The position numbers were made by a program, and so were the translations under genes. Below are positions 4,718 to 7,234 of a DNA stretch of 64,000 nt, in pieces. Positions within the stretch are counted from its first letter, which is position 1. Every line of letters begins with the position of its first letter. The DNA comes from Octopus bimaculoides. Lineage: Eukaryota. The notes under the pieces were generated by a model. The model saw nothing but the letters and a program-made list of their open reading frames with translations. It did not search any database and was not told where the DNA came from. The stretch is from the NCBI RefSeq assembly GCF_001194135.2, contig NC_068987.1, positions 24,112,581 through 24,176,580 on the forward strand, read 5' to 3'.

Positions 4718-6013
4718 CTATTGTTCTAAGGTTTGACTTCCGTGTGACTTTTTCTTATGATTAGTTAAAATTCTATTCTCAGAGAAAGTTTTACCACAGA
4801 TGTCACAATGATAGGGTTTCTCACCTGTGTGGACAGGCCTGTGACGAGTTAAGCTTTGATTATCAGAATATGTTTTACCACAAATATCACAGCTATATGG
4901 TCTCTCACCTGTATGGCCACGTACATGAATTGTTAAATGACCTCTTTGAGAAAATGTCTTACCACAGATATCACAATGATATGGTTTTTCACCTGTATGG
5001 ACACGTACATGTTGAGTTAGATGACCATTTTGAGAGAATGTTTTACCACAAATATCACAATGGTATGGTTTCTCACCAGTGTGTGTGCGTATGTGTCTAG
5101 TTAATGTACTATTGTCAGAGAATGTTTTACCACAAATATCACAGTGGTATGGGTTGTCACCAGTGTGTATGCGTATATGGTTAGTTAAACCACTACTGTT
5201 AGAGAATGTTTTTCCACAGATATCACAGTAAAATGGTTTATGTCCTGTGTGAACTTGCTTGTGACTAGTTAAACTACTATATGCAGAGAAATTTTTCCCA
5301 CAGACTGTACAATTGTATGGTCTCTCACCAGTATGAATACGTACATGAAGAGTTAAGTGACTACTCCGAGAGAAGGATTTACCACAGATATCACAGTGAA
5401 ATGGATTCTCACCTGTGTGAATACGTACATGTTCAGTTAAGTGACCATTCTGAGAGAATGTTTTCCCACAGATATCACAGTGGTATGGTTTCTCACCAGT
5501 ATGCATACGTATGTGTTTCGTTAATCCACTTCCATCAAAGAATCTCTTTCCACATATATCACATGGGTATGGTTTCTCACCAGTGTGCATACGAATGTGC
5601 TTAGTTAAACTATTACTGTCAGAAAATGATTTTCCACAGATATCACAGTGGTATGGTTTCTCACCAGTGTGCATTCGTATATGTCTAGTTAATGCACTAT
5701 TGTCAGAGAATCTTTTCCCACAGACATCACAGTGGTATCGGTTGTCACCAGTGTGCATGCGAATGTGCCTACTCAATGTGCTGCTACCAGAGAATGTTTT
5801 CCCACAGATATCACAGTGGTATGGGTTGTCACCAGTGTGCACACGTACATGTCTAGTTAATGCACTGTTGTCAGAGAATCCTTTCCCACAAATATCACAG
5901 TGGAATGCTTTATCTCTGACTTGTTTGTGATTAGCTAACAAAGAGAAAATTTTCTCTTCGATATCACAACGGTATGGTTTCTCACCCATGTGAGTATCTT
6001 TATAATTAGTCAT
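4718..6013 (-). CDS. C2H2 ZNF gene 1, 431 aa, 14 intact fingers after 2 degenerate repeats
   Basis: Uninterrupted ORF of CxxC-x12-H-x3/4-H repeats with TGEKP-type linkers. Starts at the ATG of an ancestral helix (MTNY), with A at -3. Confidence 0.85.
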   Translation of the reverse strand: MTNYKDTHMGEKPYRCDIEEKIFSLLANHKQVRDKAFHCDICGKGFSDNSALTRHVRVHTGDNPYHCDICGKTFSGSSTLSRHIRMHTGDNRYHCDVCGKRFSDNSALTRHIRMHTGEKPYHCDICGKSFSDSNSLTKHIRMHTGEKPYPCDICGKRFFDGSGLTKHIRMHTGEKPYHCDICGKTFSQNGHLTEHVRIHTGENPFHCDICGKSFSRSSHLTLHVRIHTGERPYNCTVCGKNFSAYSSLTSHKQVHTGHKPFYCDICGKTFSNSSGLTNHIRIHTGDNPYHCDICGKTFSDNSTLTRHIRTHTGEKPYHCDICGKTFSQNGHLTQHVRVHTGEKPYHCDICGKTFSQRGHLTIHVRGHTGERPYSCDICGKTYSDNQSLTRHRPVHTGEKPYHCDICGKTFSENRILTNHKKKSHGSQTLEQ

Positions 6014-6627
6014 ATTCCCTCTTTCTAAAAATGCTCTCTTAGAGATAATACAAAGGTATGGCCTTTTTCTTTGATGAATGTAGTTGAGTCTAATTCAAAT
6101 TAGAACTTCAGAAAAATGTTTTCATACAAATACTACATTGATATGTTTGTGTGAATATGTTTCAGAATAGTTGATTCGCTATTATGCCAAAATGTTTTTC
6201 CACAGATATCACAGTGATATGGTTTCTCACCTAAGTGAATATATTTGTGCATAGTCAAATGACCTTACTGAGAAAATTCTCTACCACAAATATCACAGTG
6301 GTATGGCCTTTCACCAGTATGAATACATTTATACTTGGTCAAATTGCTGATGTAGGATAAGTTTTACCACATGATTGTGCATTGGTAATTTTTTTTTTTT
6401 TATATCTCACTGAACATTTTTATGCAAAGACAAAGAATTGTTTTTAGTAATTTCTTTACTTATAGATTTTAAAATAGTTATCCTTGAATTTATATGAAAT
6501 ACTTTTTGCTCAAATTAAATAAGGGATTAGACTGAATGAATGTCTTATAACAGATGTTGAAGTGATATGATGTTTCTGCGAATGTACACATGTCACTAGG
6601 ATCAAGCTTTGTTCACATTTTAAGTGA
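6014..6627 (-). pseudogene. Decayed 5' part of gene 1 (former leader and about fingers 1-5)
   Basis: Homologous to the N-terminal coding region of genes 2 and 4, with in-frame TAA/TGA/TAG and frameshifts. The ancestral MEDKL start is absent. Confidence 0.8.
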
Positions 6628-6634
6628 CTGAATT

Positions 6635-6729
6635 CATCATCGTCGTTTAATGTCCGCTTTCCATGCTAGCATGGGTTGGATGATTTGACTGAGGACTGGT
6701 GAAACCAGATGGCTACACCAGGCTCCAAT
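6635..6729 (-). mobile_element. 5'-truncated retroposon 3' end with (GAT)n tail
   Basis: Matches the 3' end of 26880-27197. Flanked by CTGAATT at 6628-6634 and 6730-6736 (candidate target-site duplication). Confidence 0.75.
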
Positions 6730-7234
6730 CTGAATTATATGTTTATAAACTTGATTTTAATTTTGCTGCAACTTATGGTTATGAACAATAGTTACTTGTG
6801 TACTTGATAACATTAGTTTTGTTTTAAAAACTGACAAATTTCTTGAACTGGCAATTTCCATTTCAATGTCACCACAAACCCTGAAATAGAGAATATAAAG
6901 TAGAAAGGACAAAGCAAAATTGAATGGAGGTTATTAAAAAGGAGGGACTTGACTAGAGACATTGAATATTAAAATAACAAAGATCAGAAAATACTTACAG
7001 AAGCAAGACACAATAGTACGGATATGTAGTGGAAATGGATGATATAATGTGTACATGAGGACTTTAGAAGGAAGATAATAATGGGGTGTACAGATAGAGA
7101 AAACAGATCAAAATGATTTTAGTGGAAATTAGATATGAACAGATATTAACTGAAAAAACGTTTTTTTTTTCAGACATCTATTAAACATATATGAAAAAAA
7201 ATTTATTGTTAACAATTATGCATGAGAATATGTA

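Follow-up and report, generated by a model that had tools for sequence, protein, structure and literature searches.

An internal methionine as the probable start of a zinc-finger gene

Can a zinc-finger gene whose original start codon has been deleted go on coding for a protein? The question is raised by g1, the first of six tandem poly-C2H2 zinc-finger paralogues (g1 to g6) found in an AT-rich 64-kb stretch of the Octopus bimaculoides genome (64,000 nucleotides; NCBI RefSeq assembly GCF_001194135.2, contig NC_068987.1, positions 24,112,581 to 24,176,580 of the forward strand). This whole stretch is called the window below, and positions are counted from its first letter. The family is characterised by a MEDKL or MENKL start, followed by an N-terminal leader of about 85-90 amino acids and by fingers 1 to 4, a trait that g1 does not have. 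An earlier reading of the same DNA, hereafter the original prediction, had claimed that g1 restarted at a Met inside an ancestral finger helix after losing its own ATG. Comparison of the paralogues leads us to favour the view that g1 is still protein-coding, or was so until very recently. That it acts as a truncated gene translated from the ATG at 6013 or from another one at 5989 is a more specific claim, in which our confidence is somewhat better than even. The features of g1 are as follows.

4718..6013, minus strand: g1, open reading frame (ORF) of 431 codons with its ATG at 6013..6011 and 14 intact fingers
4742..5899, minus strand: 14 intact C2H2 fingers (F7-F20) in 84-nt units, C-x2-C-x12-H-x3/4-H, with 56 of 56 zinc ligands intact
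5900..6094, minus strand: degenerate fingers 5 and 6, in frame, with in-frame ATGs at 6013 and 5989; the frame stays open over 27 codons 5′ of the former
6095..6612, minus strand: former coding sequence, in which N-terminal leader codons ~11-91 survive as a remnant next to pseudo-fingers 1-4; all three frames are closed
6613..6620, minus strand: deletion junction, AAAATGTG followed by AAC, where an upstream TTTATGTG-type motif is joined to codon ~10 (GTTTGTG followed by AGC)
6634..6736, minus strand: fragment of 103 nt resembling a short interspersed element (SINE), 5′-truncated, ending in (GATGA)n, adjoining the junction and 92% identical to 27094..27195 and 35205..35288
6737..6881, minus strand: upstream leader, homologous to the region 0.3-0.5 kb 5′ of the paralogue ATGs
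6851..6911, minus strand: conserved 60-nt block, TTTCTAC(C/T)TTATATTCT(C/T)TATTTCAG followed by GGTTTGTGGTGACATTGAAATG, present in all six paralogues

As had been predicted, the 1296 nt of the g1 ORF run from an ATG without stop or frameshift. The frame remains open for 27 codons further 5′, up to an in-frame stop at 6095-6097, and about 38 residues of the ORF precede the intact fingers. Every unit of the array carries a TGEKPY-type linker (TGEKPY, TGDNPY, TGERPY and similar). TRF delimits the array at 4773..5911 with a period of 84 and 13.6 copies, and Pfam zf-C2H2 is recognised in 13-14 stretches (295.9 bits, for a cut-off of 25.2) along with zf-H2C2_2 (395.5 bits). With its repeated finger motif, the conserved Phe/Leu core and its head-to-tail array of 28-codon units joined by such linkers, g1 is a Krueppel-type poly-C2H2 gene.

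Homologues of fingers 5 to 12 are collinear in g1 and in the intact paralogues, and g1 has extra internal duplicates. F7, F8 and F9 correspond to ancestral finger 7 in triplicate (up to 89% identical), and F14-F18 to a second copy of the ancestral finger 6-10 block. The number of intact fingers is 14 in g1 as compared to 11-12 in the intact paralogues. The idea of an N-truncated product is therefore right as far as the loss of fingers 1-6 is concerned, but internal duplications, which brought the intact fingers to 14, make it more than a simple truncation. An altered DNA-binding specificity of the predicted product is plausible.

The array was kept under purifying selection while the 5′ part decayed

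Changes on the g1 lineage were polarised at sites where g2 and g4 agree, the shared base representing the ancestral state. Substitutions by codon position, ratios of non-synonymous to synonymous substitution rates (dN/dS) and lesions were as follows.

Upstream former coding part: 18/20/21; dN/dS 0.94-1.2; 9 frameshifts and 2 stops
Intact g1 fingers: 15/24/40; dN/dS 0.27, Fisher test of non-synonymous versus synonymous changes p = 3e-6; no lesions
Intact g1 fingers, changes private to g1 (references g3 and g4): 13/17/30; dN/dS 0.20, p = 6e-8; no lesions
Dead fingers 5-6 in the frame of the ORF: 12/12/6; dN/dS about 0.8; in-frame indels only

Made against the paralogues, the comparison of the ORF with the upstream part thus gives 0.20-0.27 versus about 1, in line with the original prediction. 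The lesions are divided in the same way. All nine catalogued frameshifts belong to the upstream part, which is 539 nt long, and the 1377 nt of the open frame are free of them (P = 1.1e-5). In-frame and frameshifting indels numbered 0 and 9 upstream of 6094 as compared to 2 and 0 downstream of it (p = 0.018). Over the two dead fingers, whose amino acids have lost their protection, the reading frame is still kept, as would be expected if translation passes through them; the start would then lie at or upstream of about 5990.

The combination of lesions and a neutral pattern that marks a pseudogene was found only over 6095..6633 and not in the 1377-nt open frame. Provided that the truncation is placed correctly with respect to the branch measured, the ORF 3′ of the putative new start has been under purifying selection since the original one was lost. 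Overall, the data support the conclusion that the 5′ third of g1 ceased coding long ago and that its 3′ two-thirds have been kept under purifying selection at the protein level.

The ancestral start of g1 was deleted

From 6095 to about 6600, g1 keeps an identity of 73-75% with g2 and g4 over their leader and fingers 1-4. The original prediction had noted stops and frameshifts in this homologous former coding sequence. Indeed, the MAFFT catalogue lists 9 frameshifting indels, probably 11 when a +1/-1 pair in pseudo-finger 1 is included, and at least two stops interrupt the ancestral frame as locally aligned. The homology of g1 with the coding leader of the paralogues ends at codon ~10-12 and resumes at position 18106, which in g2 lies 508 nt 5′ of the ATG. 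This gap shows that the ATG, the first codons and about 0.35-0.5 kb before them were deleted, which agrees with the predicted deletion of the MEDKL start. The break of the leader homology and its rejoining about 0.5 kb upstream in g2 had also been foreseen, but the break had been placed at codon ~8 rather than at codon 10-12. The exact junction in g1 could be placed to within about 20 nt. A search for a spare MEDKL-type N-terminal coding segment elsewhere in the window found none.

The SINE-like fragment next to the junction was considered as the cause of the deletion, an idea that found no support. The possible 7-nt repeat AATTCAG on its flanks points to a simple insertion into already deleted sequence, although it is ambiguous in that its 5′ copy overlaps the repeat. 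Copies of this SINE-like repeat, ending in CCCATGCTAGCATGGAAAGCGGACGTTAAACGATGATGA(TGA)n, occur at 6634-6736, 27094-27195, 35205-35288, 14597-14661, 17804-17863, 45008-45062 and 62251-62311. No tRNA or other non-coding RNA of Rfam matched it.

Two dead fingers surround the putative new start

In dead finger 5 of g1 the zinc ligands are replaced (C..S, and H by Y), as they are in dead finger 6 (CDIEEK, and H by R). The only indels in these two units are in-frame, of -9 nt near 5939 and of -6 nt near 5918, and there are no stops. The claim that the first two repeats of the ORF carry only in-frame lesions is therefore upheld. ATG 6013 aligns codon for codon with the helix Met of finger 5 in the paralogues (RGSMTKH in g2, RGSMVKH in g4, RGNMTNH in g5, RSNMTNH in g6), a Met that sits where a core Leu is usual and that is conserved in all six paralogues. 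Its context is gggAATATGact, with A at -3. The codon alignment thus confirms that the ORF starts at the atypical helix Met shared by the paralogues.

New AG dinucleotides were seen in dead finger 5. At 6030-6060 of g1 (minus strand), substitutions made AG after pyrimidine-rich stretches, in ctctaag followed by AGAGCatttttag and AAAG. At 25700-25716 of g3 (minus strand), ctatattacag followed by CGG was created by a substitution, and the first Cys of dead finger 5 was destroyed. That these AGs could serve as candidate splice acceptors is pure speculation.

The sister gene g3 is truncated in the same way

The other members of the cluster are listed here, together with the decayed part of g3.

16426..17598, minus strand: g2, start MEDKL, 11 fingers
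24602..25762, minus strand: g3, open frame with a 352-codon ORF at 24602..25660 from the finger-5 Met and 12 intact fingers
25805..26095, minus strand: decayed pseudo-fingers 1-4 of g3, with a deletion junction near 26090..26095
35330..36616, minus strand: g4, start MENKL, 12 fingers
52709..53881, plus strand: g5, start MEDKL, 11 fingers
from 62855, plus strand: g6, continuing past the end of the window

The first ATG of g3, at 25660, is the homologous finger-5 Met (DNMTNH) in the same context as in g1, gatAATATGact, and the frame is open for 48 codons upstream of it. The part upstream has decayed even further than that of g1, with g3-private change of 0.208 per site spread evenly over codon positions. 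No disabling lesion common to g1 and g3 was found in pseudo-fingers 1-4. The 12 intact fingers show a g3-private dN/dS of 0.17-0.19. Between g1 and g3 the pairwise dN/dS is 0.19 (p = 8e-21; 11 matched fingers), as compared to 0.15 for the intact pair g2-g4.

Several derived characters are shared by g1 and g3. In the upstream leader (about 200 nt 3′ of the conserved block) they have 6 derived substitutions in common, as compared to 0-1 for any other pair, as well as deletions of 10 nt and 4 nt. A finger junction, YP followed by CDIC(G/E)KRFFD, is present in both and otherwise unique. The upstream breakpoints of the two deletions lie no more than about 20 nt apart, at an TTTATGTGTA-type motif. 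The downstream ends differ, at codon ~10 in g1 (GTTTGTG) and at codon ~26 in g3 (ACATGTGTA).

On the strength of the upstream-leader characters and the coincidence of the breakpoints, and without help from shared lesions, there was probably one old truncation in the ancestor of g1 and g3, both descendants of which were then kept under purifying selection. The lack of common lesions in fingers 1-4 would mean that duplication followed soon after the deletion. Alternatively, two independent deletions may have occurred at the same motif. Either way, the truncation is probably not confined to g1, being common to g3 or paralleled in it. The proposed rescue of the gene by a latent start after start loss fits the selection on the array and the neutral decay 5′ of it, but the event was probably not private to g1.

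A wider role for the finger-5 Met may be imagined, in which it would be a latent or even routinely used internal start throughout the family, the N-terminal fingers being shed as a module and g1 and g3 being two fixed, long-maintained outcomes of a path towards altered binding specificity instead of a single chance rescue. We regard this idea as quite doubtful.

A conserved block upstream of the truncated genes remains constrained

The conserved block (TTTCTACCTTATATTCTTTATTTCAG followed by GGTTTGTGGTGACATTGAAATG) is found 420-660 nt 5′ of each ATG and is better conserved than coding sequence in all six paralogues. In the other paralogues, the first base after its CAG is at 18262, 26274 and 37084 (minus strand) and at 52231 and 62433 (plus strand). 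Change specific to g1 and g3 amounts to 0.077 per site in the block versus 0.19-0.235 in the flanks (p = 0.001), a level comparable to that of the block in intact genes (0.059 in g2, 0.111 in g4). Constraint on this presumed cis element thus persists in g1 and g3, which speaks for ongoing transcription of the truncated genes. Both a splice acceptor and a TATA-like core promoter are conceivable functions. A micro-exon, CAG to GAAATG with a following GTAATT, was ruled out because the GT is absent in intact g4 and also in g1 and g3.

Between block and ATG, the upstream leaders of the intact genes contain 5-13 ATGs, which is the random expectation. A T-rich AG lies 8-10 nt before each ATG of these genes, and intact g2 has a SINE-like repeat copy in reverse orientation in its upstream leader. 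Taken together, the random level of ATGs, the T-rich AG and the tolerated SINE-like copy suggest that the upstream leader normally corresponds to an intron, the acceptor of which disappeared with the deletion. Crude scoring of polypyrimidine tracts and AG acceptors singled out no site, nor did it pick out the presumed acceptors of the intact genes.

How g1 may have kept coding, and what else could explain it

The following course of events would account for these observations. In the ancestor of g1 and g3, a microhomology-type deletion of about 0.5 kb would have taken the MEDKL start, about 10 codons and the adjacent upstream sequence, and a further slip in g3 would explain its different downstream end. 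The rest of the N-terminal leader and fingers 1-4, freed from coding constraint, would have decayed independently in the two genes. The finger-5 Met would then serve as the start of the surviving array, which stayed translatable from finger 5 on because this Met was the first in-frame ATG left. The g1 product would consist of a short unstructured tail of two dead fingers, then of 14 intact fingers remodelled by internal duplication.

The N-terminal leader of the intact paralogues (36344-36616 and 17341-17598 on the minus strand, 52709-52957 on the plus strand) has no match to a Pfam family, and in tblastn its residues 9-91 can be aligned with finger arrays at E values down to 1e-11. It appears to consist of about three ancient degenerate fingers that are still translated in frame. 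Because the leader has no recognisable effector domain and would be built of old dead fingers, losing it together with fingers 1-6 need not abolish function. Transcription of g1, its 5′ exon structure, the use of ATG 6013 and a DNA-binding function are what we infer from these comparisons.

Several observations weigh against translation of a truncated g1 from 6013 or 5989. The low dN/dS of the g1 branch may partly reflect the time before the truncation, and orthologous fingers can be matched only approximately within rearranged arrays, a source of noise in the dN/dS. In the finger array g1, g3 and g4 are about equidistant, so that the sisterhood of g1 and g3 rests on the upstream leader. At 31% G+C, neither A at -3 nor retention of the ATG is remarkable by chance. 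If the upstream leader is intronic, g1 would need a new acceptor. In addition, 15 upstream ATGs are present in 6881..6014 of g1, and in an unspliced transcript these would strongly impair scanning to 6013. Ribosomes may thus reach the AUG at 6013 by re-initiation, on a transcript that starts further downstream, or by way of a new acceptor. Finally, exact look-ups of five window ORFs and searches with the family N-terminal leader and the unique g1 N-terminus found no family relative in the protein collection.

The array could be functional and yet have a different 5′ end, with an upstream exon spliced to a new acceptor in or near 6094..~5900, so that 6013 is not the start or the decayed part is removed as an intron. 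The intron-like character of the intact upstream leaders points in this direction, as do the frame that continues 5′ of the Met in g1 and g3 (by 27 and 48 codons) and the AGs with pyrimidine-rich tracts just 5′ of both Mets. On the other hand, the window holds no second MEDKL-type or other coding exon, the acceptor scoring picked out no site, and in the intact paralogues the ATG shares an exon with the fingers. Exons further upstream would thus probably not code, which leaves the need for an internal ATG. We consider such a spliced 5′ end rather improbable. Somewhat less probable still is that g1 is a recently dead pseudogene, long selected, perhaps by way of a start that is now lost, and has not yet acquired a disabling lesion. 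A dN/dS of 0.20-0.27 on the g1 lineage, higher than in g4 (0.08-0.10) and g2 (0.18), is compatible with some relaxation, and the 15 upstream ATGs of the putative leader would fit a dead gene. However, with about 12 lesions in 539 nt upstream, we estimate that neutral evolution of the open frame can account for no more than about one-tenth of the time of upstream decay, and an equally improbable survival would be needed independently for g3. The in-frame-only indels in the dead fingers 3′ of the ATG (p = 0.018) and the constraint on the conserved block also argue against recent death.

The open frame might instead be kept by passive exchange, with functional paralogues as donors in gene conversion or unequal crossing-over, so that the array would look constrained with no protein made from g1. 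Such arrays are indeed recombinogenic, as the internal block duplications and shuffled finger order of g1 and g3 illustrate, and single units can be very similar between genes (96% identity of g3 finger 11 with g4 finger 11, 94% of g1 F12 with g2 F9). However, the typical identity of a unit to its best paralogue is 79-88%, and pseudo-fingers 1-4, which are equally similar to potential donors, have not been repaired. Exact matches of the g1 array to other sequence of the window reach 38 nt at most, no longer than those between intact genes, and in the absence of longer identical tracts recent conversion from paralogues within the window fails to explain the intact frame and was rejected. Passive maintenance as a whole, perhaps from donors beyond the window, seems very unlikely to us. 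An assembly artefact, with the decayed 5′ part misjoined to the array or the lesions being sequencing errors, is barely credible. The family is highly repetitive and four runs of N occur in the window, but no gap lies within 4500-7200. Moreover, the lesions are numerous, include indels of 5-14 nt and many substitutions and do not resemble homopolymer errors, and the alignment with the paralogues keeps its order on both sides of the boundary, g3 being independently alike.

Other features of the cluster

The four assembly gaps are at 1725-1934, 14664-14673, 23619-23886 and 30745-30898. ORF fragments resembling the reverse transcriptase or endonuclease of non-LTR (long terminal repeat) retrotransposons lie between the zinc-finger genes, at 2215-3920 (plus strand) and 22728-23105 (minus strand). 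At its C-terminus (16426-16500, minus strand), g2 is truncated by a stop within the linker after finger 11 (RRIHNGE followed by the stop); the terminal finger 12, kept in g1, g3 and g4, is absent from this otherwise intact gene. At 63589-63689 (plus strand) in g6, the spacing from the fifth finger detected by regular expression to the next is 162 nt and not 84, one finger being degenerate or 6 nt shorter.

An Rfam scan of the whole window gave no matches. Results of a search with the whole g1 ORF as protein were dominated by generic vertebrate zinc-finger (ZNF) proteins. Coleoid cephalopods have lineage-specific tandem expansions of poly-C2H2 genes (Holzinger et al. 2025, PMC12513265). In the literature on cephalopod C2H2 expansions, nothing was found on exon structure or pseudogenes.

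Relation to known systems and significance

Poly-C2H2 (Krueppel-type) expansions in coleoid cephalopods were reportedly described with the octopus genome. The cluster resembles such expansions in its six paralogues within 64 kb, its arrays of 11-14 fingers, built of 84-nt units that TGEKPY-type linkers join, and its AT-rich, SINE-rich flanks. It differs in that g1 and g3 are without the family start codon, the N-terminal leader and the first 4-6 fingers. In the general scanning model of eukaryotic initiation, a lost start is compensated by the next in-frame AUG, yielding N-terminally truncated proteoforms. Similarly, the canonical ATG of g1 is gone, its first in-frame ATG has a purine at -3 and the frame is kept downstream. 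Unlike in established cases, however, the use of the g1 ATG is deduced from evolutionary signatures, and it is preceded by about 0.5 kb that once was coding and contains many ATGs.

In KRAB-type ZNF genes, N-terminal fingers are said to degenerate into spacer within clusters that evolve by birth and death. The pseudo-fingers 5 and 6 of g1, which lost zinc ligands in frame, the N-terminal leader of the intact paralogues with its likeness to finger arrays, and the internal duplications that change finger number are reminiscent of this behaviour. In contrast, no KRAB, SCAN, BTB or ZAD domain was detected with Pfam in the g1-g6 family, and the decay 5′ of finger 5 in g1 and g3 includes frameshifts and stops, so that this part has left the protein. 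The 5′ third of g1, with its deleted start, frameshifts, stops and repeat insertion, is like an unprocessed ZNF pseudogene, whereas the 3′ two-thirds, with a dN/dS of about 0.2 and all 14 fingers intact, fail to show neutral decay.

Overall, g1 is a case of ordinary birth-and-death evolution of C2H2 genes combined with probable downstream re-initiation after start loss, a tidy and well-supported instance and not a new system. No new mechanism is involved, since downstream re-initiation and the turnover of finger arrays are both well known. Automated annotation would probably mark g1 and g3 as pseudogenes or misplace their starts, and counts of cephalopod C2H2 genes would be biased accordingly. 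If the truncated ORFs are expressed, they would offer a clean natural example of a fast-evolving zinc-finger cluster changing its binding modules, with 5′ fingers lost through deletion of the start and restart at an internal Met, and middle fingers gained by duplication. The two sister genes would then attest to the stability of the truncated state under selection.

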